DNA of 64,000 bases from Mantamonas sphyraenae STR306 (taxonomy: Eukaryota; Protista; CRuMs): assembly GCA_026936335.1 (NCBI GenBank), contig JAPMXV010000068.1:1-64000 (forward strand), in the 5' to 3' direction. The notes beneath the pieces are model-generated. The model was given only the letters and a program-made list of their open reading frames with translations, did no database searches and was not told where the DNA came from. Position numbers and translations under genes: made by a program. Of this stretch, positions 19,435-42,300 are shown piece by piece. Every line of letters begins with the position of its first letter. Position 1 is the stretch's first letter.

Positions 19435-19495
19435 AAAACAACCCCCAATGCATTCAATTCCACACTCCCCCCCCCCCGCCGCAACCCATTCCCAC

Positions 19496-20815
19496 ATGCT
19501 TGGTGCAAAGAAACCCAAACGACACCAATTCCAGGTCGTTCAGGTGTGCACATATCTCAAAGTCCTGTACCAGGGCGCACACTACCTGGTCGACTACACC
19601 TCTCGCGAGGTCTTTCGCCTGGACAACCTCAAGGAACCATGCGGCAGACTCACAAGCGGCTCGGCGATGCTCGAAGGCCAAATCCACTTTTTCCCCAGTG
19701 GCAGCGGCCGTGTCCGCCTGGCCAGCCGCATGAGTGTCTCTTCCCGCGACAGCCACGAGTCCGACGACGACGATGACGACGACAACGACCAAGATCGAAA
19801 CTCCACTGCCTCCTCCGCAGACTCTGCCGACGAAAACGACCACGACGACAACAACGACCACGACGACGAAGCTGCCTCCTCCTCCGCCGCCTCTCCGACC
19901 CATCTCATCTCCCACTGGGCAAAGTCGCCCGGAAGCTCCTCTCTCACCTCTGCCTCCAACATCCCCGCCATGGACCAGCCCCTGGCCAGACCCGCCGCCA
20001 AGGCACCGGGTCCAAGCACCAACGTGCTCTTTGCCGGCGTCGACCTCACTGCCCTTCGCAACAAGAAGCAACAGGACGCCGCTGCAGCTGCCTCCAACTC
20101 CAACACCAACGATGCACAAGACTCGCCAGGCTACATGGCAGACGTCTCCACAACCACCATCGAACGTGCAGGCAGCGCCGCCAGCGACGCCTCGTCTCCA
20201 GGCTCTGGGTACACCTTTGGCTACGGCAAGTTCCACTCCGCCGGCGTCGCCTACACAAACAGCGAAGACGACCACGACTACGATTACGGCCGCATGATCC
20301 CCAGCAAGGCCACAAAAGGCCGCTATGCAGGCTGGAAAACCACAGCCGCTCGCCAAGGCGCAATCCAACGCACCCTCAACGCAAAGGGCCTTGGCCCACA
20401 CCTCAGCGGCGACGACTTTGCCAGCGACGAAGAGGATCCCGAGGACGATGACCACGACGACAATCCCGTCACCTTTGACCTCGCCGACCTCGACGACGAC
20501 GACAACTCTTCCCACTCCACCTCCCATTCCTCAACCGCCAGCAGCCCTCGTCTCACCTCTGATGCCGCAGACTGTGTCGAATGCTCCTTTCTCGAAGATC
20601 TCTCAGGCGCAGACATCCACGCCTGCAGCGAATGCCACCTCGGCGCCTGCGACACCCACGGCGAAGCCTGCCCAAACTGCGGCACCTTTTACTGCTCCAC
20701 CTGCGGCGACGACGAAATCCACTCCTGTACAGAACAACACTGCGACGTACGTGCATGTGCCTGCACCATGCACGAAGTCGACTTTGAGTGGCTATGCCCA
20801 GACCACACCCCGTAG
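19496..20815 (+). CDS. Unknown protein: small N-terminal beta domain, acidic disordered middle, C-terminal multi-CxxC Zn-binding region
   Basis: Open frame with genome-typical codon usage; C-terminus CVEC..CSEC..C..H..CPNC..CSTC..C...HC..C.C..H..CPDH. Confidence 0.75.
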   Translation: MLGAKKPKRHQFQVVQVCTYLKVLYQGAHYLVDYTSREVFRLDNLKEPCGRLTSGSAMLEGQIHFFPSGSGRVRLASRMSVSSRDSHESDDDDDDDNDQDRNSTASSADSADENDHDDNNDHDDEAASSSAASPTHLISHWAKSPGSSSLTSASNIPAMDQPLARPAAKAPGPSTNVLFAGVDLTALRNKKQQDAAAAASNSNTNDAQDSPGYMADVSTTTIERAGSAASDASSPGSGYTFGYGKFHSAGVAYTNSEDDHDYDYGRMIPSKATKGRYAGWKTTAARQGAIQRTLNAKGLGPHLSGDDFASDEEDPEDDDHDDNPVTFDLADLDDDDNSSHSTSHSSTASSPRLTSDAADCVECSFLEDLSGADIHACSECHLGACDTHGEACPNCGTFYCSTCGDDEIHSCTEQHCDVRACACTMHEVDFEWLCPDHTP

Positions 20816-20839
20816 TCCCGTCCAACGAAAACACACACA

Positions 20840-23800
20840 ATGCTTCCCACACGACACTTGTTCGTCTTGGCAACTATCATTGCCGCATGCATTGTGCCCG
20901 TCTGTTCGCAGACGCCGGTCATTTCTGGCACCTCGCCACCCAACGTGGCCATCACAGGAACCTCGTTCCTCGTCCGTTTCACAACACCTCTCACGATGCA
21001 AACCGTCCCCACCCTCGGCGACCGCATCATCCAGATCGAGTACAGGGATTCAGCCCAGGACTCCGACCAGCATTCCGCCTACTGCGCCACAAAGGTACGT
21101 TTCGTCCGCCCTGCCCGCTTTCACCTTGGCCCTCTCTGAAAGGCTTGCTCACACCACGCGCACGCACACCGCCACAGGGAGGAACCCTCCTCTCTGTTCA
21201 CAGTGCCCAACTCATGCAAGACATCGTCAACGCACGAAACACAATTTGCAGCGCAAGCACTGTATTTTGGCTCGGCCTCAACGACAAGGCCAACGAAGGT
21301 ACGTCGCCGAAATCTCTCCCTTCACAACTCCACGAAACCTTCCGCTAACCTCCGGGCCCTCTCGTTTCCCGCTCCCTCTCCACATCCCTCCCATCCTTCC
21401 CTTCCACACACACCCGCCCCACCCCTAACCCCGCACGCAACCATCCTCCCCTCGACGCATCCTCCTAGGCACCTTTGTCTTTGACGACGGCAGCCCCGTC
21501 ACCTACACCGCCTGGAACAACAACGAGCCCAACGACTGGAACAACGGCAACCCGGGTGAAGATTGCACAGAAGTGCGCAGGTACGCCACCATATCCATCC
21601 ATTCCCACCCCGCCCCAAGCCCATGGCCCTCTCCTTCCCCAGCCTTGGCCCCGCCAAAGTCCTCCCGCTCCTCACCTCCTCACCTCCTCGACCTTTCTTC
21701 TCCTCCGCCACGCCCCCTGCCCTTGCCCCTCCTCCCACAGTACGTCCAGCGCCGCAACTTCTTGGAACGACCAGCGATGCGACAGCACCCGCAGGTGCAC
21801 CGTCTGCCAGTTCCCTCCTGCCGTCAAGTGCCGAATCAACGGCGTTGTTTCCGCGGGCACCTTTGTTAACAACACCTTCGTCCAGTGCACCGCTCCTGCC
21901 GTCGACGACCTCGCTGTGGATTATACTCTCGCAGTCTCTGTCGACAACGGCATCAGCTACACTGCCGATGCCACCCTTAACCTGCGCGAGCCTCTTTGTT
22001 ACGACCTCGACACAGGCAAGTGCATCAACACCCGCCATTTTTTTTCGCCCCGCCAAACCCCGGCCCTAACTCGCCACCCCCCACACCCACCCACAGGTGC
22101 CGCTGTTGATTCCCAGTCCAACGCCACCTCCATTACCGTGACTGCTGGTGCTCCCCACCAACACACCATCCACACCTGTACCAAGAACGCACAATTCACA
22201 GCCGACCTTGTCACAAACATCGCCGCCGGCACGGGCCTCTCCTCCCTTCCGGCCTCCATGCCCAACCGTGCCCTTCCTGTCCGCGACCTCCTCGGCGGCG
22301 CCATCATCAACGCCCAAAACACAAACGAGCAGGTCTCCATCACCTCCCGCATCCCGGAAATTGCAGACGACTACTCCGTCTCCTTCTGGGCCAGCATCAA
22401 CGGCTTCACAAACACCCTCACCTGCATCCTCCGCCGTTCAAACGTAGAGAATGGCATCAATCCGCACTCTCCATCCCTCTTCTTTGGCGCTGGTGCCTAC
22501 TCCGCCACCCTCTACACAAGTGTCACCGGTGAGGATTTCCTGCAAGTCGTCTCGGGCTTCACCGGAAACACCTGGCACCATTGGGCTCTTGTCCGCAAGC
22601 GCTACACAGGCACCTGTCTCTACATCGACGGAACCGCCGCAGCCTGCACAACCTCCTTCAAAGACGACGAGGCAACCCTCAAAACAGGCGCTACCTACTA
22701 CCGCCTCGGCAAATGTGCAGACACTCTTGCCTCCACTCCTGCCCTCATGGAGGACGTCATCCACTTTGGCAACACCGGCCTTACCACTGCAGAGGTCCAG
22801 ACCATCTACAACTACGGCCGCCCCTCCCAGAAGCCCATCACCTTTTCCACGGCCCGCCTCGGCGAGTCCACCTCCCGCCTCACCATCACAGGAATCGCCT
22901 CAGGCACTTATGTCCTTGTCAGCGCAAAGGCGGGCGCCTCTTACAACACAACCGTCACCGTCAACCCGGCTGCCTTTGACGGCACCCAGACCTCCCACTC
23001 CCTCCCTGCCTCCGTTGTCGGTGGCACAAACCAGGTCGTCGACATCGTCTCTCGCGACGCCTACGGCAACCTCCGCTCAACCGCCGCAGACGATGCCTTC
23101 CGCCTTACCCTCACTGGCTCAAACGGGGCCTCCACCTCTTGGGACGCCGTCAACGTCGCCCCCGCAACCTACCGCATCACCTACCTTGCCTACGCAGACA
23201 CCTACACGGCACGATTCTACTACACGGCCGCAGGGTCCACCCTCTTCAACACCTCCTCCCTCACCGTCACCAGCGTCGCAAACACCTCCATTCCAAACTC
23301 CTTTGTCCTCGCCCAAGGCAGCCCTTACACAGCCGACGCAACCCCTGCCCCGAAGCTCGCCTTCAAGCCCGTCGACCCGCTCCTCAACAACCGCACCTAC
23401 GCCTCCTTCGACTGCAACCTCGCCACTCCCGCCGGCAGCGCCGTCGTCGTACGCGACCCTACCATGCCAACCACAAACCTGGTCCTCGGCTTCTGGATCA
23501 AGACCACCACCGCCTCGGGTGCCCTTCTCCATTACTCCTCGGGCGACTACGCAAACGACATCCGCCTTAACAACCCGTCCTCCCTCGTCGTCGTACGTGC
23601 AAACGCAGACCACTCTTCCGGTGCCTCCTTCAACGACGGCGCCTGGCACCACCTCCTCCTTTCCTGGACCCATGCCACGGGTGCGGGCCAGCTCATGCGC
23701 GACGGTGTACAGGTCTCCACCTTTACCCTCGCCCAGGGCAACAACATCGGCGCCACAAACGCCGTCCTCGTCATCGGCGGAGGTCTCACCGCAAACCGCG

Positions 23801-26800
23801 CTCTCGACACAGCTCCCGTCGACGCACACTTTGCCTACGTCACCTTTTCCACATCCATCCCTTCGGGCCACCTCGACAACTTTATGCGCGCCATCCCGGC
23901 CACCACCAACGAGCTCGTCCAGGGCTACACCTTTGCCGAGTGTGCTTCTGCTGGCCTCACTTTTAGCAGTCCTTTCAAGGTCCAGCCCACAGACCCGCCT
24001 GCCGACCCTTGGTCGGGTCTCATCCGCTTTTGGAATTTCAACTCCGACAGCTCCGCAGGCACCGCCGTCTCCTCCTCTCTTTGCCCCGACCGTGCCATCA
24101 CCGGCACCAGCGCAACCGCCACCATGGTAAACACTGACCAGTGGGTCGCCGGTGTCGATGGCACACAGGGTGCACAGGTCACCAGCGACACCGTCTACAT
24201 CAATCTAGCCGAGGGTGTCGGCCAGTTTCTCGGCGGTGACATCGGTATCATGGCCTGGATGAAGACAACCATGAGCACAACCGGAGGCTCCAACTGGCAA
24301 TGGCCGGGTATCTTTGCCCGTGACCAGAGCGGCGGCAGCAACGACGTCTTCCTCGCACAAGTCTCCAACGACGGCAAGAGCGCCTTTTCTCGCGGCAACA
24401 GCAACGTCAAGAGTGCCACAACCATCAACACAGGCGCCTGGATTCATGTTGCACAAAGCTACACCGTCTCCAACGGCAACGTCGTCATCTGGATCAACTT
24501 TGCACAAGATGCCACCGGCTCCGTTGGCGTACGTTCCTCTCTGCCCCCAGCCCCTTTCCAAACCCCACCCCCACCCCACCCCTCCCTCACACTCACCCAC
24601 CAACCCACTCACACATCCTCCCCCCCCCCCCCCCCCCCAGTCCGGATCATTCACCGTCGGCCCTGCCCTCGACAGAATCGGCTACAAAACAGGCGGCTCC
24701 AGCTCCCTCAACGCTGCCCTCGACGACATCATGCTCTTCAACACACCCATCTCCACCACCCAGCTCAACGCATACAACCAGTTCCGCACCACCCTCTGCC
24801 GCGCAAAGGGTGCGGAACTCCTCCTCAGCGCCTCCATCGTCAATTCCGCTCCGCCCCCGGGTCTCGTCGCCACGGATCTCGTCGACTATACCATCGCCCA
24901 TACTACCCTCCCTGTGCCCTCCCAGTCCGGTTCCTTCACACGCAACGGCAACCCAGACGTCACCGGACTTCTCAACGCAAACAACATCACCCTCACCGTG
25001 GCTGGCACCTACTCCGTCACTGCCAGCGCACGATACCCGTCCGACAACATCCCGGGTACCGTCCAGTCCGTCACTGTCACCCCGGCCGCCTTTGCCCCGA
25101 CAAAGAGTCTCTGGACCGGAGGCGACGGCAACGCGGGCGTCCAGGCAACCATCACCCTCCGCCTCTTTGATGCCTTTGACAACAACGTCACAGACGTCAC
25201 AGGCTTCGTGGTCACCCTCACCCACAAGACAACCCCTGCCCAAACAGCGCAGGCCACCCTTGTCCCACAGGCTGACCACATCCTTGTCCGCTACACCTTC
25301 ACCCTCGCCGGTGACTACGAGGTCACTGCCACTGGCCATGCCGGTGTCCAGCGCACCGTCACCATCCAGGCAAACACAACCCCAGACGTCGCAAAGTCCA
25401 CCCTCACCTCCCTCCCCGGCGCGCCCGTCCCGGCAAACACGCAGGTCGCCTTTACCATCCAGGAGCGCGACACCTACAACAATCCGCGCACCACCACAAC
25501 ACTCACCTGGACTGCCGCTTGGACTCACCCGACCCTGCCAAACGTCGTGGCCGCCGTCAATCCCACCACAAACGGCCAGTACACTGTCACCGCAACCACA
25601 ACCGTCGCCGCAACCTACACCCTCTCCCTCGTTGCCAGCGCCACCTCTCCCACAGCTGCCGCAGGTGTCTCTCTCACCGTCCTTCCCCTCGCCGCCCAAG
25701 CCGCCCAAAGCGTTGCCCACCCGTGGCAGGTCTCTTCCCCGCGCATCGTCGACACCTCTGTCGTCATGTTCCTCCAACTCAAGGACCAGTACAGCAACAA
25801 CCGCACAGACTACTCTGACGCTGCACAGGTCTCCGGTACTGCCACCGCACACCCAGGCCTCAACGTCGCCGCATCCGTCGCAAACGCTCCCGGATACCCA
25901 GGCGCCTATCTCCTCACCTACAAGCCCACCATCGTCGGCCAATACTCCCTCAACACCTTGTTCTCCTCCTCCCCGACCCAGGGCTCTGCCGAACAGGTCT
26001 CCTATCTCCCTGAGCCTATCCAGCCCAGCAACTGCCAGATCCTCGGCACCCAGATTGCAGGTGAAACCGCTGGCGTCCAGTCCCAGCTCGTTCTCCAGCT
26101 TCGCGACCGCTTTGGCAACAACCGAACCTCAGTCGGCGAGCTCCCGGTCTCCGTCACTCTTGTAGGAGGTGCCACAAACGTACCCGTCGCCCTCAACCCA
26201 GTCGCCGCACAGGGTCGCTATCTCGTCACCTACACCGCCAACATCGCAAAGACCTACACCCTCACCGCGACCGTCGACGGCACAAATGTCATCGGCTCCA
26301 CCGCCACCACCGTCATTGTGCCCGCCGCACCCAGCACCCGCTCAAACCTCTTTGGCGCCTACGACCAGTACGGCATCGCAGGCCTCACCACTCCCTACAC
26401 CATCCAGACGCGTGACGCCTTTGACAACGCCGTCACCACAGGCGCCGGTGCACTCACCTACGACGTCTCGGTGCGCACACCCGCCGGCGATCTCCACTCC
26501 TCCTCCGTCGTCTCTACTCCCACACACATCGGCAACGGACGCTACTCCTTCACCGTAAACGTCACTCAGGCACGCGTCGCCCTCAAGGTCTGGATGCGCT
26601 TCGGGGGCGCACACATTCAGGCCTCCCCGTTTGACTTTTACGCACACGCAGACCTCCCCTCCTACGACCACTCTGCCATCTACGGCTCCGTTTTCGACGC
26701 ACAGGCTGGTCAGACCTCCTCCATTGTCCTCCAGCCGCGTGACAAGTTCAACAACACCATCAACACCTGCGCCGGCAACTTTGGGCCCGACAGCAACTAC

Positions 26801-29800
26801 GTCACAGATGGTGGCTACTGGCCCGAAAACGACTGGACCTGGATGGGTTGGTGGTACATCCCCTCAAACTATCCCAGCTCCCTCAACGACATGGTCTTTG
26901 TCAGTGTTAGCAAAGGCGCAGGCAACCAGATCATCAACGTACGCAACCCGACAAACCTCAGGCAGCGCCAGCAGTTTGGATCAGGCGCCAAAGACACCAC
27001 TACAGGCATCAACCCGCCCAAGGACCAGTGGTTCCACATGAGCCAGGTCCGCGTGGCCTCCACGGGTCTGTCCACCTTGCGTGTCGACGATCAGTCAGGC
27101 ACCCTGAACGGAATCACTGGCGCTTGGCCAAACAGCGCTTCCGTAGGCATCACTTGGGGTCAGGAGCAGGACGCCTACCTCGGCAGCTACTCTTCCAACC
27201 AGCGCGCGTTTTGGTATCTCGACCAGTTTGTTGGTTTTGACGTCGCTCTCTCCGCCGCTCAGGTCCAGGAACTCCGCTACCAGCGTATCTACACAGACGT
27301 ATCCAACATTTTCATTCTCCTCACCCTCGACGAGTGTGTCGGCAACATGATCATGGACTACTCTGGCCGCGGCAACCATGCCCGCAGGGACCCGGGCAAG
27401 AACGACATTGCCTGGATGCCCGCCACCTCTGCCCCCATGACCGCCCCCGTGCGGCCCATCTCTCAGCCAGGCGTTGCTGACGTGACCCCCACCCTGTTGG
27501 CACACACCCCCCGCACCTACGCCTCCCCCAGCGTCAATGTCACCCAGGCCGGCGTATTCTCTCTCGCCCTCAACTCTGTCACCACAAATTCCCCGTGGGC
27601 TTCCACTCCCCGCAACGTCCTCGTACGTTCTGCGCCCCCCTACACCCGAAACACCCTTGCCTATGGCCCAGCCCTCTCTGCACCCTGCACCGCAGGCGAG
27701 CCTTGCTCCTTCACGCTTAAAATGCGCGACGCCTTTGGAAACAACCGCAGCGACACCTCCCTCGGCCTTTCGTTCTCCGTCCGCTTCGCAGCCTCCCCGG
27801 CTCTCGTCCAGGCAAACCCGGCCAATGATGGAACCTACTCCGCCTCTCTCGCCTACAACATTTCCAGCGCACCGGTCTCCCTCGCTGTCGATGTCGCCGG
27901 CGTCCACATTGCGGGCTCTCCATTCACTGTCACGGTCCTCGCTGCGCCCATTTCCGTGCCCAACTGTGTCGCCTCCGCCTTTACCGATTCGGTCAACGGC
28001 GCCTCCGTCGACATTGCCATCCGCGACCGCTTCGACAACGTGCAGAGCACCCAGTCCACAGCATTCACCGTCACTGCAACTGGCCCAGGCGGCGTCGTCG
28101 CATCCGCCACGTCCCAGAGCGTCTCTGCAGCACTGCATCGAGCGACCTACAACGCAACCGTCGCCGGCGCCTATTCTGTTCGTGTCCACATTGGCGCACA
28201 GGACACCGTAAACAGCCCCACAGCGGTGACTCTTCGCGCCATCGCCACCCACCCTCCCCAGTGTCGTCTCTTTGACTACTCCTCTGCCCCTCAGTCCCAG
28301 ATCGTCGACCAAAACTATTTCGTACGCCTTCAGGCACGCGACTCCTTTGGCAACAACCGCACCTTGACGACAGACTCCTTTACCGCAACCGCAGTCACCA
28401 CGACCCTCGCCGGCACCTCCCATTCCGTACCGGCCCCGGTCCAGGCCTCCACCCCCAGCACCCTCGGCCAGTACCTTGTCCGAGTCAAGACGACCATTGC
28501 TGGCTCCTACACACTCACCGTGTCTGCCAACGGCCTCGACGTACCCCCTCGCACTTTCTCCATGCTGCCTACCACTCCCGCCGCCGCAAACAGCGTTGTC
28601 TACGGCCCTGGCATCGCAAACGCCATCGCCGGTTCCTCCAACCACGTCTTTGTCCAACTCCGCGATCAGTTCAACAACAACCAGACCACAGGCGGCCAAA
28701 CCATCGCCTACTTCCTCGGCTCAGCTTTCAACGCCACCGTCGCCGCCGCAGACTCCCCTTCCGCCGGCATCTACAGGCTGCCGTACCTCCTCACCCTTGC
28801 CCAAACCTACACGCTCAGTGCAACTCTCCAGGGCGACCTTATCTCCTCCGCCACCTACTCCGTCACCGTTGCCCCGGCGCCGATCGCTGCAAACGGCACC
28901 ACCGTCTCCTCCACCGTCCTCGCCTCCTCCCTCGTCGGCACCTTCTCCACCATCCAGTTTACCGTCGTCGCGCGTGACGCCTTTGGCAACCTGCGACCGG
29001 CCGCCACGGACACCATCGCCCTGTCCACGTCCACCCCGGGCCTCGTCACCATCGAGTCGCCTACGCTCGTCTACTCCGTTGGCCAGACTGCCTATGTCGG
29101 TTCCTTCACCACAAAAGGCACCGTGGGAGCCGCAGACATCCAGCTTCGCGTCCCATCCGACGGATCGCGACACGTCCAGGGCAGCCCCTTTTCTCTGGCC
29201 ATCTTGCCCACCGCAAACGTCACCTCATTCAACCCTGAGTTTGGCCCCGTCACCGGGGGCACGCGAGTCACCGTCCAAGGCAACAACTTTGTCGACTATG
29301 CCGCCCTGCTGCGGGTCACCCTCGGCACTGTCCCTTGCGCCTCCACCCAGTTTGTGTCCACCTCCACCCTTGTGTGCACCACCGCCGCCGCACTCAATCT
29401 CAACAACGTCACCCTGACCGTCACAAACAATGGCGGTGTCAACACCAGCGCCCCCAGCGCGAGCGAGTTCCAGTTCCTGCCCAAGGAGACCGTCACCTCG
29501 TTCTCCCCAAACAACGCTCCCATCTACGGACGCGTCCAGGTCACCGTCATCGGCACAAACTTTGCCGCGAGGCCGCAGCTCGCCTGCAAGTTTGGCACCA
29601 CCATCAACACCGTCGCCCCCATCTTTCTCACCTCCACCTCCATCATCTGCGATGCCCCCGCCGTCGACGTCGGCAAGGTCTCGCTTGCTGTCGCAAACAA
29701 CGGCGAAACCTTTGCCGCAGACCCCGTCAACCTTTTCACCTACATCGAGCCCTTCTCTCCGCTCTGTAGGACTCCCAGTGAACTCAGCGTCGGTGTGCCA

Positions 29801-32800
29801 GAGCGTGAACGTCTCGGCATCAAGTACTACCCCAACCTCGCCGTCGGCGCCTCCACAAACGGTTCCGACACGGGACGCGCAAACGGCGTCACACCAGACT
29901 ATGTCGTCGACGGCGATCGCTGCTGCAAAAAGACCCCGGCTACAGAAGGCTTCAAGTGTGGCGTCGCCTTTCCCCAGATGCTCTACAACGACACCCAGCT
30001 CGTGCAGTTTCAGATCCACCTGCAAAAGCCGGCGTTCATCAACCAGTTTGTCACCTCATGGTACCAGCCCTGCCGCAATCAGCCCCCGTTCTACTACATC
30101 GATTACAAGAGCCTGCAGACCGGCAACTGGGTCCAGGTCCTCCAGCGCGTCACAAAGTCCGATGCCACCGCCCTCGGTTCCCAACAGAGTTGTTTCTTTG
30201 TCCCGTCCGATCAGAATGACGCTTCCCTCTGCCTCGACTTTCTCTCCACCGAGCTCCGCGCAAAGGACTTTCGCATCCGCTTCAACAACACCCAAATTTG
30301 GATGGGTGTCCTCGACGTCACCACCGATGGCGGCTGGATTTACGAATTCCAGGCCCATGGCGTTTACACCGACGTCGCCGAGACCATCCAGGTGCAGCAG
30401 AACGCCATCAATGGCTCCACCGTGTTTAGCTCCCACAACACTGCCCTCGGCTCTCTCACCATGGCCACCCTCAATCACCAGAACGAGCTCCTCCTCACAA
30501 ACGACTCGAGCAGCACGAATTTCACCATGACCCTCTACAAGGACGGCGTCGACGTAACCTCCACCTACCTTGTGGGCACACGCTCGCGCAACCTTGTCGA
30601 CGGCCGCGCAACCTTTGCCGACCTTGCCCTTGTGCGTCCAAAGATTGGTGTCTACACCTTTGTGCTCAACAGCGTCGCCGACCACCTCGTTCCCACCGTT
30701 TCCTTCAACTTTACCGTGTCCCAGGGTCCCGCCTCGTACTTGCGCGTCGTTTCGGCCACCTCCATGACCGCCCAGTCCCTGCGCAACGTCTCCCTCATCC
30801 CGTGGTCCCTTCAGGCCTATGATGTCGCCGACAACTTTGTCGCCTCCACAGATTCGTCCCGCACTGTGTACGCCCAGTTGGCCTCCTCAAACGCAACCAG
30901 CATCCTTACTGGCACCGTTGCCGCCACCATGGTCAACGGCGCAGTCACCTTTGGTTCGCTCGCCCTCACCAGGCCTCTCGTCGGCTCGCACATCATCCGC
31001 TTCCTCGCCGCCGGTCTTACAAACACCTCGGTCACGGTTTACATCACCAGCGGCCCGCCCGATGAACTCACCGTCGAGACGGCACAGGTGTCCTATGCCT
31101 CTGCCACCCTGGTGCCGCTGCAGGATTTCGTGCTTACTGTGCGCGACGCCGGCCGCCTGCAGACCCCGCTTGCAGACGCCGCCTTCCAGACTGTGCTCAC
31201 CTTTGCAAACCAGAGCACACACACGCTCACGGGCTCCTATGTGGCCACAGCCACCGCCGGTCGCGTCGTCTTCTCTGGTCTCAGGCTGCACAGTCCTCCC
31301 GTGGGCCAGCTGCTGTTCACATTTGGCTCCAGCGACGTGCTCGTCAACGTGTCCCAGACCATCACTGTGGTCACCGGCGCCCCGCTGACGCTGCTGCTCG
31401 CAAACAACCCGCGCACCAGCTATCGAAGCGCCGTCACCACGCACCTCGACACGTTTGTCGTCCTTGCGTACGACGCTGGCAATACATTTGTCGGGGCCAC
31501 GGACGCTGCCTCACGCCAGGTGACTCTCACCATGGTCAACGCCACGGACAACTCGGTGTTTGTCAACCACAACACCGCCTTTCAGATGACATCGGGCAAC
31601 GCAACCATCGCCACCTTGCAGTTTGCTAGCCCCAAGGTCGGCACCTACGTCCTCAAGATTGACAGTGCTGGCCTCACGGGGTTCCAGCGCCAGATCACAA
31701 TCACCATTGGCGAAGCTCACCGTTTGGTGCGCACCACTGCCGCTTTGCTCCAGGCAAACACCACGGCCACCACGCAGCTGCCCGCCGTGTCCCTCATTGT
31801 GCACGATGCAGGAGGCTCTTTTGTCGGCGATCTTGACACGCTCAACCGCACCATCACTGTTTCCTGCAACGTCTCCTCTGTCCTGGCTTCCTCTGGCGCA
31901 ACTGCTTACATGGTCAACGGCACCGTGACCCTAGATGCCATTGCTCTCCTCAGCCCGCCGCAGGCTGGCTACAAGCTCACCTTTGCCTCTGCAGGCCTCC
32001 TTTCCACGTTTGTCGACGTCGCCGTTCGTTCGGGACCTCCCGTCTACCTCCAGGCATCTGTCGATGCGGCCACTTACCGTTCCGAGGCCTCTGTTTCTGT
32101 CAACACCGTCACGGTGCGCGCTCTCGACGCCGCCCAGGTCCAGGTCGATCCTCACTACACCGCAGGTCTCGTCGTCACCGCAACGTCTCTCAATGGCTCT
32201 GCCAGTCTGTTTGACGGCACAAAGGCCATTGCTTTCCCGCAATCTGCCAGTGCCCTGCAGTTTAGCAACCTGACCTTCCTTGCGCCGCCTGCACAGGTGT
32301 TCAAGATCGAATTCTCCACCGCCCAGCTCACAAGCACATACATTGACGTCGACATCCTTGTGGGCGACCCCTACAAGCTTCAGGTGTCGCCGTGGGGGCG
32401 CACGTCGTATCCAACCAACCTCGATGTCGCCCTGGACGACTTTTACGTCGTGGCCCTCGATATTGGCGGCACCCTCACCTCCACACTCGACGGTGCTGAC
32501 ATCGCCGTCGCCGGCACAGGTCTCACCCTTGCAGGCACGTTGACCTTTTCCATGGCTGCCAGTCGTGTCAACGCCACCGGGATGCGCGTGGTTCGCCCGG
32601 CCAACAACTCGTACACGCTGGTCTTCTCCACACCCAACATCGTGTCGGCCTCCATCGGTATCACCATCACCGAAGGTCCGGCTGTGGGTTTGCGCTTCAT
32701 TGGTGCAAACGCGGGCAGCTACCGTGCAGAGGCTTTGGTCCACCTGGCCACACAGGAACTGATTACCATCGACGCCGTCGGCAACCATGTGCCTCTGGCT

Positions 32801-35800
32801 CTCGCTGCTGAGCACAATGTCTCTGTACATATGCTCAATGCCTCGGTTGCGTCCAAGTTTGGTGGCATTGTCTCCCTTGTCATGAACAACACGCGCGTGC
32901 GTTTTGCAAACCTGACGTTTGCGAGTCCCAAGTTTGGCCACTATGCGCTTCAGTTTAGTGCGCCGGGACTCGATTCTGTCAGTGCGACGTTTGAAATCAC
33001 CATCGGAGAGCCCGTGTTCATGCGTGTCGTCTCGGGCGCAGCCATCTCTGCGGCTACATCGGACAACACTCTGTTGCCCGCGGTCCAGCTTCGTGCCTTT
33101 GACGTTGCCGATTCGTTTGTCGGCAGTTTGGACACATTCAACCGCACCGTCTCTGTGTACATGGAGCCCTCCTCTGGCAGCCAGCTCAACACATGGCAAG
33201 CGACCATGGTTGACTCGAGCGTCACGGTCGACGCGCTTCGCTTGGCCAACGCTCGTCGTGGCACCTACACCCTTGTGTTTGCCACGCCGGGGCTCACCAA
33301 CGCCACAGCCACGCTCACGGTGCAGCCGGGCAAAGCCTTTGCGCTCAGCGTGCAGCCTGCGCTCGTGGTGTCCAGGTCCGACTACAACGCGCCCTGCCCA
33401 CCATCAACGTCACCGTACTCGACGCAGGCGGAGACCGCACTTCCTTGCCTCCCCTCAACTCGGCCTGCTCCTACCCGGTCAGCACCCACGTGTCCATCAA
33501 CCAAACCGTGGCCAGTGCCCTCGTCGGCGACTCGGTCAACACGTTTATCAGCTCCGGGTTTGCTTCGCTCGATGCACTTGTCTTGCGCAACCTCACCACG
33601 GCCTACTATCAGCTCGATGTGCGCTCCTGTGGTCTCCTCAACGTCTCGCTGCAGGTGCGCGTCGATATTGGTCCCGCGAAATCGCTCCAGGTACAGTCCC
33701 CGCTCGCGGGCGCCTCCATCGAGAGTGTTGCCGTCGCGCGTGTGCCCGCGATCAACTTGGTGGCACTCGACGCCGGTGGCTCGTTTGTCGGCGCCACGGA
33801 CCCTGTTTTGCGGTCCGTCACCGTGTCCCAACTCAAACTCGGCTCCGAGCCCACTCTCGACCTTGCCGGTGCCCTCAGCGCAAACATGTCCCAGGCGAAT
33901 GTCACCTTGGATGCCATTGATGTGCGTGCTCCCAAGGTCGGTGCGTTCACCCTCCAGCTCCAGTCGCCGGGTCTCGTGGGCACACGCGTCTCGCTCGCCG
34001 TTAGCCAGGGTCCGCCCGCGAGCATGCTCGTGGGCACCGTGGCCCAGATCCGCTCCGACGCACTCGTCAACGTGTCTGCCTTCAGTGTGCGCCTTGTCGA
34101 CGCCGGTGCAAACACAATCACGCTGGCCCAGTATGCCTCATACAACGTGTCTGTGCGCTCGTGGCTGCCATCAACCCTTCTCTTTGGTAACTTTGCCTAC
34201 ACCACCACCAACGCTTCCGTCTCCATCGACGGACTCACCATGCGCCAGCCCAAGGTCGGTACATACACGGTCGAGGTGGCCACAGACGCACCGGGCGTGC
34301 CTGCACGCAACGTCAGTTGGTACGTCAACCCCGGTGTGCCCGCATCGGTTGTGTTCTTCCAGGAGCCTGTCACCACGTTCAAGAGTGCCCCCGTGGTGGA
34401 GTTGCCCTCCATGCGCATCTCCGTCCTCGACGCCGCCGAGAACCCGGTGCAGGATCCGTCTGCAGGCTTCGACGTCAAGACATCCGTGCAGGGTCTCACA
34501 GTCCTCGGTTCCACCTCTTATCTCATCGACTACGGCGATGGCTTTGTCAACGACATGCGCTTGCCCACGCCCAGGCAGGGCAACTACACTCTGCTCATCC
34601 AGGTGATCGGGCTGCAGAACCTCACGCGCACCATCACCATCGTCGAGGGCGATCCCCTTTCCCTCAAGGTCACCACGCCGTCTGCTCTCACGCGCCCTGC
34701 ACAGATCAACACCACCTTGTCTGCCATTGCAATCGAGACACGAGACGCAGGCGACGTGCGCACACGCTTGGGCAACTCCACCGTGCAGGTGGCCATGTCC
34801 CCTTCCCCGCAGCTGCTCACAGGCACCACTCTGCTCCAGGTCGTTGACGGCCACGTGCTTTTTGCCAACCTTGCGCTCACGCGACCCTCGGCAACAGTGG
34901 CCACCTACACTCTGACGTTTACTTCCTCGCTCCCGACCATCAATGGCACCACGGTTGTGGTCACCATCACCCGTGGCCAGCCCGAGCGACTCGTCGTCAT
35001 CGACCGTGGCTTCTCCGCCTACAAGAGCCAGCAACGCACACCCGTGTCCTCAGTGCTCCTCCACGCCCTTGATGCAGGCTCTGTGTTTGTCGGTGACGCA
35101 GACCTGGTCCAGCGCAACGTCCTCGTCCGTTCCACCACGCCCAATAACATGACCCTGAGCACAAACGGTGTCACCCACACCATGATCAACGGCAGCGTGC
35201 GCGTCGGCCAGATCGAAATCCTGGCACCCAAGGTCGGCGCCTTTGCCTTTGAGCTCGAGGTGGCCGGACTGCCGCCCATCCAGGTGCCCTTCACCATTGC
35301 TGTCGGTACGGCCGTGTATCTCGAGAGGTACGTGCCTGTGTGGCCTGCCAACATCACACTTGTGTCGCAGCAGGTCACACCGGTGTCCGTCATCAAGGTG
35401 CGCACACTTGACGCCGGCCGCAACATCAACGGTGCGTTTGATGCACAACAGCGTGTCATCACCGCCACCGTGGTCCAGAGTGCAGGAAGCAAGGGCGACG
35501 CAAACACGCCTGCGCCTCTGTTGCCCCTTGCCACGCCCATCATCATGACTGATGGCGACGTGACCATCACAACGCTGCGTTTGGGTTCGCCTCGCCAAGG
35601 TATGCACACTCTGGAGTTGTCTACGTCCAATATGCAGCCCGTGCGCGTCTATGTGTACGTCACGCCCGGTGCCGCAGTGGCCATGCGCTCCGACTCTGCG
35701 ACCACCCAACTACCGGCAACCTACCAAGGGGGCTCCACAGGCCGCGTCACGCTGCCCACGGTCACTCTGCGCGCTGTCGACGCGTCGCTCAACCCACAGA

Positions 35801-38800
35801 CAAACCTGACCACCCAAACAATCCAAGCTCGTGCCACACTTGTCCGCGCTGCTTCCAAGCCGGGCGTGGACGATGTTGTGTCCCTATCCACCGCTGCCGC
35901 CATTCGCACGCGAGCTCCCGTGCAAGTCCTGGCCCAACCGGGCGACTCGGTGCCCTTGTATGGCACTACGTCTCGCGGCACCGATGCTCAAGGCGAAGTT
36001 GTTTTCGCCGATCTGCAGCTCAACGCGCTCGCAGGCGAATACCGCATCGAATTTGTGGCCACCGGTGGCTTGCAAGCAGGCACGCAGGACGTGCGTGTGC
36101 TGCCAGGTCCCGCACGCGCACTGGAAATCATGCGCAACGCCACGCGTGTGTACCGCAACGACCTCGCACCCTTGCCTGAGCAGCCGCTGCTGCGCATGGT
36201 GGACGATCAGGGCAACTTTATCAACACGACCAACACCAACCGTGTGCAAGTGGACATTTCGCCTTCTGTGCAGCGTGTCACAGGTGAGGTCGTCTCGGTT
36301 GTCTCTGGCCTTGCCTCCTTCACTTCCATCAGCTTCCTCGGGCGCTACGGCGTGTCGTACACCCTGACGTACACACTCCTCGACGCCTCGGGCACAAAGG
36401 TGGCCGGCTCCACAGAGATTGTGCTGCCCGGAGGCTTGTCGGTGCGCACATGCGACGAGGCGCGCGCCGGATCCCAGCCGGACACCGTCACAGGCACCAC
36501 CTGCCAGTGCCGTCCTGGATTTGTTGCTTCGGACCCAACTGTGGCCTGCCAGCCGTGTCGCTCGGGCGAGTACCAGCCCGATGCCAACCAACTGCAGTGC
36601 TTCTCCTGCCCACCCAACATGGACACCAGCGGCATCATCGGCGCCGCATCCCTCGACCAGTGCACATGCATTGACGGCTACTTTGAGCCCGGTGCACTGC
36701 GTGGTGCCACAACCACCGGTGCACGCACTTGCCAGCGCTGCACAGAGGGCGGTGTCTGTGTCCAGGGCCAAGAAATCCGAGCCGCACCGGGCTACTTCTC
36801 CTTCAAGAGTAGCACCTCGCAGTTCTACCAATGCTTCAACTCCGAAGCTTGTCAGGGAGGCGTGAACAACACCTGTGCCCAGGGTTACAAGGGCCCGCTG
36901 TGCAGTGTGTGCATCGACGGCTACGGTAGCTTTGGCAACGTGTGCACCCCATGTGGCACACCCGAGAGCTCATGGCTGCTCATGCTCCTCCTCCTCCTCT
37001 CCTTTGTGGTCATGCTCTCGTTCCTCGTGCGCACCGCCGCCGGCCGCAAGAGTGCCGCGTCCATCATTCTCAAGATCTTCCTCAATTATCTCCAGGTGCT
37101 CGCCTTTGTCGGTGATTTCCGCCTGGACTGGACCACAGAGACCACAAGCCTGTTCCAGGTCTCCTCCCTGGCCCTCCTCTCCCTCAAGTTCCACCCCATC
37201 GAATGTGCCGTCGAGCCAGACTTTTATCAACGATTCGACGCCTACCTCACCTTTGTGTTCCTACTCATTGGAGTGCCCGCATTGATCTTTGGTATCCGCT
37301 ACCTGTGGGCTGTCCGCTGGAGCAAGCGCTTTGGCATCGAGGTCAAGCGCCCCGACCTGGAGATCGAGCGGTCCGACCTGCACCTCACCAACGAGGTGGA
37401 ACGCCGCAAGTTCCTGGACAAGCTGGCCAGTGGCCTCAGTGACAAAGAGATTGAGATGCAGATGGCAAGCAAGCCCAAGATGTCATACCAGCAGGCGTGG
37501 CTGTACCAGACCAAGAATCTGTACGCCCTGTCGCTGTTTGTCACCCTGTTCCTGTTCCACCCCATCATCAGCAAGGTCATCCTGCAGACGTTCAACTGCC
37601 AAGAATTCGAAGACGGTAGCTCATACCTGGTGGAAGACATGAGCGTGTCGTGCAAGGACCCGCGATACGTCATCTACCGCGACACGTACGGCGTGATCAT
37701 GCTACTCAGCTACTGCGTGGGCGTGCCTGCCATTGGTCTGTACGTGCTCATGAAGAACCGCAAGCAGCTGATGGCTCCCACTGTCATTGCCCGCTACCGA
37801 TTCTTGTACGACGGCTACAAGAAGAAGCGCTTCTTCTGGGAGATTGTCATCATCTTCCGAAAGCTGTTTGTCGTGGCCATCACAGTGTACTTCCGCCGTG
37901 AGGCCCTGACACAGCTGTACACGGGGTTGTGGTTGAGCATGGGCGGACTGGTGGCCCACCTGTACATGCGTCCGTTTGCAGACGCTCAGGCCACCAACCT
38001 CGAAACTCTGTCGCTGGGCAGCACAACTGTGACCATGCTCACTGGTCTGCTCTTCTTCTCCTCCGAAACTACGAGCAACGAGCGCGTCATGCTCTCCATC
38101 CTGCTCATGGTCATCAACTTTGTGGCTGTCGGTGTGTTTGTCTTTATCATTGCTCGCGAGTTTATCCGCCTCGCGCGCAACCAGCGCCTCGTCCTGGAGA
38201 TGGAGGCACGCGTTGCCCGCGAGCTGGAGGAGCGCAAGCGGCTTAACAAGGCAACCAACGAACGCATGCTCCTGCTCAAGAGCTTCGACTCGGAGAAGGA
38301 CAAGCGCTCGGGCACCATCATGCAGGTGGAAGCCTCGCCTCTCAAACGCCAAAACTCCGCCGCCTCCATCCGCTCCTCTATGGTCATGGAGTCCTTGCTG
38401 CAACGACGTGACTCGCAGCAGCTGCTGGATGCCGTGGCTGCTGTGCACACGATGCTCAAGGCCTCGTCCGCGTGGATTGGTGTCCAAGAGTACATGGAGC
38501 AGCAGGCTGAGAAGCTGGCCAATGTGGAGCCGCGCTGGCACATGTGGCGCATGTACGCAGCGCGCAAGACATGGGAACTGGAACACGAGAACGATGAAAG
38601 CCCCGCGGTTGACGAAACATGGCCAGACACTGTGCTGGAGATGCAGGAGCGCTTCATGGATGACGATAGCAACGAAGTGATCAGCGGCGTGGACTATGGC
38701 ATGCTGATGTCCGTGAGCAAGACGATCGACCGCAAGGGATCCGAGGTCCAGGCGTCCGATTTGGAGGAGTTGATCACAGCCGTGTTCCGCAAGGAACTGG

Positions 38801-39366
38801 ACACATACGCAGGCAGGTTCAACGAGCGCATGAACACGCCCACGGTGCTGTCGCAGGTCAAGTCGCTCAAGCAGGTGCTCATGGATCCCGTCCTGTACGA
38901 CTTTTTGGATCAGCACGTCGAGTCGGAGGGTGGCCTGGGCCAACCAGCCCACGTGGCCAACTTTTGCAGGGATGTGGCCGCCTTCCGTCACAGCTTCTAC
39001 GGCATGGGAGATGGCGAGCGCGATGACGTGGCCAACGAGATCCTGTGCACGTACTTTGACGACGAAACCGACGAGTACGTCGTGCCCGTAGACGACGACG
39101 TATGGGAAGACAAGGCCCACCAGTTGGGTCTGCTGGTCAACGACCGTCTGTTTGAACCGGACATGTTTGACGAGTTTGTCGCCCATTTCATGCAGTCGTC
39201 CTTTGACGCGTGGGTTGCCTCGATGAAGGTGCAGCCCGAGCTTGTGCGCACACGCATGCCCAAGAACGCAGGCAAGAGCAAGCGGTCCAGCAAGCGCTGG
39301 ACGTGGCGCAAGAGCGGCGGAGGCAAGCGCAACAGCAGCAACGGATCGTCGGAAAACTTGTTGTAG
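20840..39366 (+). CDS. Giant multipass surface receptor (~5,970 aa): signal peptide, IPT with inserted C-type lectin, 4 LamG/pentraxin, ~12 filamin-type Ig, 2 IPT, galactose-binding-like domain, ~18 Ig-like repeats, Cys-rich region, ~9 TM, RGS-like tail
   Basis: Exons 20840-21094, 21178-21298, 21469-21580, 21741-22015, 22097-24528, 24641-39366 join in frame if 1 nt is restored near 33389; total 17,922 nt. Confidence 0.85.
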
Positions 39367-39371
39367 TCATC

Positions 39372-42300
39372 TTACAAAAACTCAATGTACACCTCGTCGT
39401 CATCACTGTCCTCTTCCCCTGCTCCTGCGCGTCTCGCGGACAACAGCGAGCCGAGAATGGCTTGTTGGAATGCTCGTGAAAGATCCAGCGTCTGTTGTCC
39501 ATCTGCGTCTTCTTCGCCCTCCAGCATCATGCCCATATCTGTCTCAATCGGCATGGCGTCCATGGTGCGAGCGGCCTCTTGCGCTGTGATGCGTGCCTGC
39601 TGGTTGCCGTTTTCATCGTGGACAATCACCTGGCCATCATCGTCCTCAGGCTCCTCCTCGTCGTTGTCGCCATCCTCCTCCGAATCATCGTCGTCTTCAT
39701 CTTGCACGTCCACGCGCTGACCATCGGCACCTTGCAATTGCATCCGTCCTGTGCGCGCGTCGAGAACCAGCACCGGCCCGTCATCGTCATCTTCGTCGTC
39801 ATCGTCGTCGGCCATCATCCCATCCTCCATTTCCATCCCATCCATGTCCTCCTCATCACCTTCGTCACCATCCATGTCGCCAATGGTGATCCAGGCGGGC
39901 ATCTGGCCTTGGCCAGCGGCTCCGGCGCCCTGCTGCCCGAAAATGAAATTCATCAGTTCGGGAAACTCTTGGTCAAAGGTGAATCCCTGGTGCTGCAGGT
40001 CGTCCCCATCCTCGTCGTCCTCCCCGTCGCTGTCGTCGTCTTCGTCGTCGCTGTCGTCGTCCTGCATGCGACGACCCACAGAGTACATACGCACAAACGA
40101 CGGCCGCTCCGTGTCATCAGGCATCTCCAGGACAGCCACGCGATCGTCGCGTTCGTCCACAGAGAGGTCGATGACCGAGCGGTCGAGATTGATGCTGGAA
40201 ATGAGGGAAAAGTCGGTTGTGTCCACGGTTTTGAAGCCCTTTTCAAAGGGCACCCTGTTGCGCGCACGCACCTTGACGGCGTAGCCCACCTGTCCGCTGT
40301 GGTTGAACACACACTTGGCTTCGTCCAGCGCGGCGCATGTGGTGCGCAGCTTCCAGGTGCGTGCGTCCCACACGGTGTTGTTGATGATGACCTCCTGGCC
40401 CGACGGGGTGAACGTGTGAAATGCAAAGTCGGTAAGCTTGTCAAAGCGAAAGACAATCTGTGCACTGCGGATGTCCCACAGCATGCCATCACTGAGTACC
40501 AGGGTGTCGTCTGGGCTGAAGCAGGCCACGTTGTTGCGGTAGTAGTGCAGCTCGCGAGGTCCGCGCTTGGGATCGACAAAGGTGTTGAGCAACGACCCCG
40601 TGTGTGCATCGTACAGCATTGCCTCGCTTCGTGTGGTGCCAAGCACCCACTCGTCGCTAAGGTTGGAGAACACCGACCGATGGCAGCCGGAAAACTGCAA
40701 CAGGCTGTTGCTCATGTTTCCCACTTCCCACAGACGTGAGCCTTCGGCGTGTGACGGACAGCTGGTGAGAAAGCGAGAAGAGGTGGCGTTGGGGGTCACT
40801 GTGGATACCAGGGTGCTGTGGCACTGCCAGTCACCCTGGATTTCGCCCGAGTTGAGGTTGAACACCTTGACACGTCCGTGGTGGGTTCCTGTGATCAGCG
40901 CGCTGCCCTGGTCACCCCAGAAACTGAGGGCGGACAAGCCCACACCCTCGTCGTCGCGGATGTTGCGCGCAAATCGGAAGCGGGAGTACACATACTGTTT
41001 GGACGCCTTGTCCTGTGGACGAAAGGCACGCGTGCCGTCGACGCTGCGAGCAAGCAGACGCCGTGTGGTGTGACGTGCGTGCTGGCCACTGCGCCGAGGC
41101 GGGCAGCGGTGTGGACGAAACAGCGATTGCGGAGGCAGCACGGAAATCGGGTGTTTGCACTGCTTGTGCTGGTCGTGCAGGAACTGCGTCACCATCCCAT
41201 GCAGAGTGACATGCTGGGAATGCTGGGAATGCTGGGAATGCGGCTGCGCCGCGTGCACGGTTGTTGTGTTGTTGGCAGCTGTCCAGGACGGTGTGGACAG
41301 ATGCAAAGAGGAGGAAGATGAGGAGGACGAAGAGGCGGCGGCTTGGTCGGCGGCAGCGGCGACCCCTCCAGAAGGATGCGCTTCGTCGATGCTCATGCCA
41401 GCGCCACGCAAACCAGGAATGGGTACCATGGGCAGAGTGCGTGTGAGCATGGGAGTGGCAGGCGATATGCCAGGTCCCAAAGCGGCAATGTCCTGCAGAT
41501 TGTTCATCGAGGGCGAAGGTTGCACACGGCCACCGTTGTTGTCAAGCATGAAGCGCACCCTGTCGGCGGATTCGGCAATGGAGGAGGAGCCACTGTTGCG
41601 CGATGTCGTTGTCTCTTGGCTGACCTCCGAGCCCTCTTCAGTCAGTGAGGCCATGCTGTGTGCAGACAGGGATCGTACAACCGAAGAGCCGGTGCGTCCA
41701 CGTGACGGTGTGCCACGCAACCTCGGGGTTTTTGTGTCGTTCCCATGGGCCACGTCTGCACTGCTGCCTGACACGAGTTTGGCTGGCGAAGGACCAAGGT
41801 TGTCGACGCGCCGACGTTTCTGATCCGAGCCACCCACGCGTGCTCCCGAGTCTCGCTTCTTGCTGCTGCTGAACGAGGCCTTCTTGGCCTTTGCTTTTGC
41901 TTTTGCATGTTTGAGGTTCTTGAGCGCACTACTGCTGAGCTTGGCAGGGCTGGAATGCGTTGCCGCCGACGAGCCACTCAGCACCACGCTGCGCGTCCCT
42001 TTGATGGGCCGTCCGGGTGTACCTGTGTTGATTGCGGCGCCCACGCCCGTGTTTGAGTCGGCTGCGTCGCCGATGGACCCGGACGAGTCGATAGCTGTCG
42101 CATCGGCTGCGCCGCCCTCGCTGTTGATGTTGGCAAGGCCTGCCTCGATGCCAAGCGTCTGTGCAGTTGTGTGCAGGCCCAGAGCGTGCAGGTGCTGCTG
42201 GATAAGCATGAGCAAATCCCCTTGCTGGTACTCCAGGCGTGTGTTGTCGACCACATCGGCCTTGTGGATCTTGGCAATGGGTGCGTCGCGTGTTTCCAGG

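Follow-up and report, generated by a model that had tools for sequence, protein, structure and literature searches.

A giant Mantamonas protein that joins a CRMP-like nine-helix membrane core to RGS-like domains

Mantamonas, a marine gliding flagellate, is a member of the CRuMs, a group that branches close to the base of Amorphea. In the window analyzed here, a 64,000-nucleotide stretch of Mantamonas sphyraenae STR306 (contig JAPMXV010000068.1, positions 1 to 64,000), a six-exon gene at 20840-39366 encodes a giant putative receptor of 5,973 amino acids, a length that includes one base missing from the assembly. All features of the gene lie on the forward strand: a signal peptide, an ectodomain with a stalk of Ig-like domains and nested lectins, a Cys-rich region, a membrane module of nine helices, and a cytoplasmic tail with two RGS-like domains. 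What appears to be new is the combination of a CRMP-type nine-helix core with RGS-like domains; the separate parts and their logic are known from CRMPs and from seven-transmembrane (7TM) RGS proteins. An earlier note, made from the sequence alone, had read the locus as one chain of ~5,970 amino acids with a C-type lectin, four LamG domains, filamin-type and IPT domains, ~18 further Ig-like repeats, a GCC2/GCC3 region, and ~9 helices. The single chain is borne out by short-read contigs and an orthologue transcript, and the domain list by Pfam, hidden Markov models (HMMs), and structure models.

The exons span 20840-21094, 21178-21298, 21469-21580, 21741-22015, 22097-24528, and 24641-39366. Introns 1 (21095-21177, 83 nucleotides), 2 (21299-21468, 170 nucleotides), 3 (21581-21740, 160 nucleotides), and 5 (24529-24640, 112 nucleotides) have GT-AG borders, and intron 4 (22016-22096, 81 nucleotides) has GC-AG borders and is stop-free and in frame. 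Retention of this segment was rejected, as it is absent from the orthologue transcript of Mantamonas plastica (P0162). That transcript encodes 5,135 amino acids colinear with exons 2-6, is 42% identical to the giant protein (34-69% by exon, with 69% for exon 3), and reaches from the signal peptide to the Cys-rich region, spanning the later introns and position 33391 without interruption. At 33391, contigs from three of three short-read runs (X1-X3, depth 38-79) carry an extra C that restores the reading frame. Since these runs come from one study and probably from the same strain, they mark an assembly error in which one C was lost, not an independent occurrence. An intron at 33376-33427 was rejected as an account of the frame change, because its phase is wrong and the missing base suffices; a ciliate genetic code was likewise discarded as unnecessary for this gene. 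Right after the missing base, five to seven substitutions relative to the short-read contigs are bunched at 33573-34632, which suggests a badly polished stretch or the other haplotype. Frame changes inside the membrane module, seen as overlapping matches in different frames, also occur in paralogues at C59:230028-230103, C34:53018-53088, and C5:199583-199619, and may be further assembly indels in long genes.

The Cys-rich region, membrane domain, and tail share one open frame in M. sphyraenae DNA, and two paralogue transcripts of M. plastica, the species that also supplies the closest proteins to the giant receptor, each encode a single chain that runs from the stalk through the membrane domain to RGS. 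The giant model was searched exon by exon, and the genome searched comprised 25,061,354 bases in 78 contigs; the published assembly is given as 25.06 Mb in 78 contigs, diploid, with 59% guanine plus cytosine (GC) (PMC10492846).

The signal peptide (20840-20908) was recognized by sequence reading as a hydrophobic N-terminus, and an equivalent stretch starts the M. plastica orthologue. An IPT/TIG domain with an inserted C-type lectin follows in exons 1-4 (20909-21990; TIG model positions 30-77 in exon 4, E = 0.006), and in the orthologue Pfam finds Lectin_C (E = 7e-13) and then TIG. The lectin carries four core cysteines together with EPN and WND motifs, both of which are kept in the two Mantamonas species. 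These motifs mark the mannose/N-acetylglucosamine-type Ca2+ site 2 of C-type lectins; by such motif criteria the domain is of the mannose type, with sugar binding predicted. Next come ~14 filamin/GEX2-type Ig-like repeats (22099-29206; Pfam Filamin E = 5e-43, Ig_GEX2_N E = 5e-14, and a repeat HMM), in agreement with the GEX2-type extracellular repeats of the earlier note. Eleven are whole and three are split by LamG insertions (two halves found by the HMM, the others by sequence reading). The inserted domains are LamG-like domain 1 (22330-22830; Laminin_G_3 E = 9e-10, nesting by sequence reading), domains 2 and 3 in tandem within one repeat (23380-24770; domain 2 Laminin_G_3 E = 4e-10, exon-5 part of domain 3 Pentaxin E = 0.04), and a pentraxin-like domain 4 with a GQEQD motif (26800-27420; Pentaxin E = 5e-4). 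The Pfam scan returned three Laminin_G_3 stretches, and just upstream of domain 4 the repeat HMM matches over its first 45 positions only.

The two IPT domains named previously were both found (29219-29745; TIG E = 1e-20, two stretches), so that the lectin-split copy near the N-terminus is a third. A weak F5/8 type C (discoidin, galactose-binding-like) domain (29760-30350; E = 0.0035) has a counterpart at the same place in a Rigifila relative (P0006; E = 1e-4), both copies being under the Pfam cut-off. The region 30360-36440 consists of 18 tandem Ig-like beta-sandwich repeats of ~110 amino acids, which have no Pfam name and were delimited by a repeat HMM. Structure prediction on domain slices, a check proposed in the earlier note, gave two Ig-like beta sandwiches for a repeat pair with a predicted local distance difference test (pLDDT) score of 95.9. 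Its nearest structural matches (Z ~8-10) are to Ig-like domains of GH2 proteins and to S-layer and invasin domains; these matches reflect a common fold and are uninformative on function. A Cys-rich region (36440-36960) with GCC2/GCC3 (Ephrin_rec_like, E = 1e-7) and DUF7630 (E = 9e-5, under the cut-off) leads to the membrane. No GPS/GAIN motif was found by Pfam before the first helix at E <= 0.1, a search that a divergent copy could escape. With ~35 Ig-like domains at 4-4.5 nm each, the extended stalk is estimated at ~140-160 nm; the cell itself measures ~3 micrometres in Mantamonas vickermani. The giant receptor contains 74 N-glycosylation sequons.

The membrane module (36961-38160) was modelled with nine helices (pLDDT 92.6). 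Its last helices match Pfam TRP (PF06011) at E 4e-8 to 3e-7, with 32.8 bits against a cut-off of 28.5, over positions 273-402 of the 426 in the Pfam model. The proposal of a TRP-like Flc/Pkd2 module therefore stands as a Pfam match, and TRP is here a label only, with no solved TRP channel matched. Indeed, Foldseek gave no match of the module model to solved structures at E <= 0.001, the best Z in a wide search was 7.5, and no TRP channel appeared among the 50 matches in either structure-match list, a missing match not being proof. The six-helix voltage-sensor and pore-loop fold of TRP channels and polycystin-2 was not recovered, nine helices being predicted, nor was the seven-helix fold of G-protein-coupled receptors (GPCRs), which appeared only at E >= 0.15 with TM-scores of ~0.1. 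Many eukaryotic proteins with predicted structures do resemble the model, with TM-scores of 0.6-0.84, and a search with the C-terminal 988 amino acids gave 12,186 matching clusters at E 0.001. Named relatives come from Rigifila, Fabomonas, Thecamonas, Mesostigma, euglenozoans, Anaeramoeba, and ciliates. In the family consensus, Q, W, E, R, and K residues of the module are conserved in at least 90% of 135 sequences. The same module carries TIR, START, or WW tails in other relatives, or short tails (median 83 amino acids). In the ESM Atlas, the nine-helix module also occurs with LRR domains in cnidarians, and one module cluster has giant DNA viruses as its commonest taxon.

A comparison with the core sequences published for PbCRMP1, PbCRMP2, and TgCRMPa (PMC9815656 supplement), made by eye and carrying no E-value, revealed shared motifs that follow one another in the same order as in the Mantamonas protein and the family consensus; in PbCRMP1 and TgCRMPa their spacing agrees as well. 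Shared in the first part are the Cys collar, S-x-x-x-KI-x-x-NY, a Cys behind a re-entrant segment, two loop cysteines, and G-I/V-P; the second part has Y-x-F-L-x-x-G-Y/F-x(4)-W-E-x(4)-R-K, PF, and L-E-x-x-S, the last in only the two Plasmodium cores. Word-index protein searches, which gave few matches, returned no named CRMP. CRMPs are, on this by-eye likeness of the core motifs, the nearest characterized family.

The tail, previously described as RGS-like, has an RGS fold twice rather than once: domain 1 (38437-38829) is strongly degenerate and acidic, and domain 2 (38860-39234) lacks the canonical residues of a GTPase-activating protein (GAP). A tail-only profile matches EhRGS-RhoGEF (E = 1.8e-4), and hhalign pairs the tail profile, at 97% and E = 1e-10, with a profile built from the remaining RGS domains of the organism, from which the receptor tails were left out. 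Pfam finds RGS twice in the two M. plastica paralogues (E = 1.5e-15 and 1.6e-12). The fold of the window's own copies is thus assigned by profile homology via relatives. Matches of the tail profile to PPR proteins were dismissed as sums of weak repeats.

In RGS4, the GAP residues are the Glu-Asn of the SEEN motif, a catalytic Asn, and the Asp and Arg of helix 8. With these G-alpha-contact motifs positioned through RGS16/RGS4, the Glu-Asn pair is present in none of 22 receptor-tail domains, the catalytic Asn in two, the helix-8 Asp in none, and the Arg in one; the window's two domains have none of them. By comparison, of seven RGS domains elsewhere in Mantamonas, six keep Glu and the catalytic Asn. 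The receptor-tail domains, which have net charges of -8 to -28, are therefore probably not GAPs. The G-protein-interacting domain of the earlier note holds as regards the RGS fold, with the canonical G-alpha-contact residues gone. The genome has three G-alpha genes (C10, C38, and C59), and RGS domains that serve as scaffolds without a GAP role are known (PMC3971589).

The gene is one of a large family. The genome contains 111 membrane-module matches, which merge to at least 69 loci, and RGS-like tails occur on 16 paralogues, often in tandem, with the fold kept in both Mantamonas species. Many paralogues lie in frames of 3,000-10,900 amino acids with the same repeats; the largest (C26; 10,900 amino acids) also has a C-type lectin, and another (C12) gives good RGS scores together with its M. 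plastica orthologue. When relatives were surveyed for transmembrane and RGS architectures, as the earlier note had advised, RGS was found in only two of the 52 long tails of the closest relatives, both from M. plastica. Among these closest relatives, the RGS fusion was thus seen only in Mantamonas. In a quick version of a paralogue tree, the RGS-tailed members form two Mantamonas-only groups, one of them mixed with tail-less members, a pattern that fits one or two gains with later losses. Several isolated domains were also noted. Near the C70 receptor, ~11-15 kb away, extra copies of its RGS-like tail lie in short frames (C70:151835-152536 and 156411-156581) and are apparently partial duplications. 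Receptor-tail-type domains at C46:193898-194245 and C49:555296-555595 have no listed adjacent membrane-module match, and a well-scoring RGS domain in a 2,904-amino-acid frame (C70:27106-27456, L033) is likewise without GAP residues.

We tentatively favor, at somewhat less than even confidence, a CRMP-type sensor of contact or glycans; its tail would bind G-alpha but leave it switched on. The stalk of ~35 Ig-like domains would present a Ca-dependent C-type lectin at its tip and four LamG/pentraxin domains as side branches. Binding of prey or substrate glycans would place a load on the stalk, which would pass through the Cys-rich collar to the nine-helix module. On the cytoplasmic side, the two acidic RGS-fold domains would dock activated G-alpha as binding modules, not as GAPs, and so tie the receptor to the small G-protein system of the cell; the outcome could be feeding, adhesion, or secretion.

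Several observations weigh against this sensor. The residues lost from the tails also bind G-alpha in classical RGS domains, so this binding may have gone from the tails as well, and G-alpha is not necessarily the partner. Direct Pfam searches find no RGS match on the window's own tail, the copies being too divergent, and the Atlas score of that tail as RGS is only 0.81, which is lead-level. An RGS-like tail is absent from several close paralogues, so the core functions without one. The orthologue transcript stops where the membrane domain begins, before its helices, and the linkage of the tail hence depends on the open DNA frame and on paralogue transcripts. Finally, the Toxoplasma CRMP complex acts independently of host N-glycans and of the sugars tested (PMC13672358).

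The loss of contact residues and the acidity of the tails fit a possible, if doubtful, alternative: a CRMP/Pkd2-like sensor that signals via its membrane module, through calcium entry or a secretion trigger. The RGS-fold domains would then be scaffolds, or acidic sites at which some partner distinct from G-alpha docks. Fission yeast Pkd2, which has PF06011 in common with the giant protein, passes calcium upon membrane stretch (PMC9727806), Toxoplasma and Tetrahymena require CRMPs for the secretion that contact sets off (PMC9670195, PMC9815656), and relatives bear TIR, START, WW, or short tails on the same module. However, the CRMP accounts, as far as drawn on, report no channel activity, the PF06011 match covers only ~130 of 426 positions, and retention of the RGS fold in 16 genes, often in tandem, suggests a specific partner.

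An unlikely reading gives the protein a mainly structural role in gliding and attachment, as an adhesin or a filament of the surface coat; the module would be an anchor, the tail would connect to the cell cortex, and little signalling would take place. Most of the mass indeed lies in the repeated Ig-like units of the stalk, which resemble S-layer, invasin, and filamin-rod domains, the protein has its 74 N-glycosylation sequons, and the family is large and expanded in a gliding cell; yet the conserved polar residues of the module and the folded cytoplasmic domains exceed the needs of an anchor. A true receptor-GAP, in which a ligand-controlled RGS domain switches off a self-activating G-alpha as in plants and Naegleria, is even harder to credit, since the full GAP residue set is present in none of the 22 tail domains and the nine helices match no GPCR. 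Its precedent is the Naegleria 7TM-RGS family, with lectin/EGF ectodomains and active RGS domains (PMC9283941), and the good RGS scores of the C12 pair and the catalytic Asn in two tail domains speak for it. That the locus is not one working protein, but two genes or a broken allele, is very improbable: the frameshift, the nearby substitutions, and a diploid genome with room for a broken second allele (contigs drop rare variants) are set against three contigs that restore the frame, a continuous orthologue transcript 42% identical on both sides, no apparent second signal peptide, and paralogues that are single open frames of 5,000-10,900 amino acids.

The favored contact or glycan sensor also admits a bolder and more doubtful extension. 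The CRMP/Flc/Pkd2 module may serve generally as a receptor core, one that in Mantamonas is coupled directly to heterotrimeric G proteins, with the RGS-like pair as effector modules that bind activated G-alpha and so gate or localize the receptor. If true, this would link a receptor to G proteins by a route distinct both from GPCRs and from the GAPs of the 7TM-RGS type, and would offer a handle on the output of parasite CRMPs, for which the step in rhoptry discharge that follows host contact is still unexplained (PMC13672358). More immediately, a free-living flagellate near the base of Amorphea has at least 69 such cores, 16 of them fused to a recognizable signalling fold, and the candidate partners are concrete, with three G-alpha subunits on one side and the two small, soluble tail domains on the other. 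The significance is limited, in turn, by the known parts and general logic, the many paralogues, and the possible loss of G-alpha binding.

The genes around the receptor are tightly packed. An Hsp70-family open reading frame (ORF) lies 13 nucleotides from the next ORF (window 17002-20840), and the ORF directly upstream of the giant gene (19448-20815, forward strand, 455 amino acids) stops 24 nucleotides before its ATG, on the same strand and in the same frame. This upstream ORF has an acidic low-complexity middle and a Cys/His-rich C-terminus, with no Pfam match. Downstream, a convergent gene (39372-44708, reverse strand, 1,778 amino acids) has its stop 5 nucleotides from the giant gene (39366-39372) and shows weak WD40 and ARM-like matches only. 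GC skew keeps a constant sign across blocks of tens of kb. Packing and skew blocks together prompt two questions, the location of the promoters and a possible polycistronic mode of transcription; terms on these questions were looked for in the M. sphyraenae genome paper and not found.

Known systems resemble the protein in parts. The gamete adhesins GEX2/FUS1 share extracellular filamin-type repeats (Ig_GEX2_N E = 5e-14), although they are single-pass proteins and nothing indicates a role in mating for the Mantamonas protein. Flc/Pkd2 proteins share an above-cut-off Pfam match across the last membrane helices, but have a small N-terminal domain where Mantamonas has a giant ectodomain. The 7TM-RGS proteins (Arabidopsis RGS1 and Naegleria 7TM RGS1-4) likewise combine a multipass protein with a cytoplasmic RGS fold and, in Naegleria, with lectin/EGF ectodomains; the Mantamonas protein differs in its nine CRMP-type helices, the lack of a Pfam GPS motif, and two RGS-like domains devoid of GAP residues. 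The relatives from Rigifila, Fabomonas, Mesostigma, and Thecamonas have the Cys-rich and nine-helix core in common with it. Of these, the Rigifila relative has filamin, IPT, F5/8-like, and 110-amino-acid repeats in identical order, those of Fabomonas and Mesostigma share the 110-amino-acid repeats, and none has the RGS-like tail. The literature searched yielded no protein in which a nine-helix core of CRMP type is joined to RGS-like domains; the earlier note's statement that no known protein has this combination stands to that extent, although CRMPs and Naegleria 7TM-RGS proteins already share much of it.

CRMPs, which act as contact sensors in apicomplexans and ciliates, come closest. In Plasmodium, Toxoplasma, and Tetrahymena, they have nine helices, Cys modules, and sometimes CLECT or Ig-like ectodomains (PMC9670195, PMC9815656). 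Further marks of CRMPs are a CRMPa/b heterodimer and a requirement in regulated exocytosis. As in the Mantamonas protein, a signal peptide and a large modular ectodomain precede ephrin-receptor-like and EGF-like Cys modules directly before the nine helices. The Mantamonas protein differs in its stalk of ~35 Ig-like domains with nested lectins, in having no detected Kringle or MAR domain, and in its two cytoplasmic RGS-like domains, of which the CRMP accounts drawn on make no mention; Mantamonas also lacks rhoptries and mucocysts. The many such cores in Mantamonas, 16 of them with RGS-like tails, support a view of CRMPs not as an alveolate specialty but as a single lineage within a broad family of eukaryotic receptors whose tails can be exchanged.

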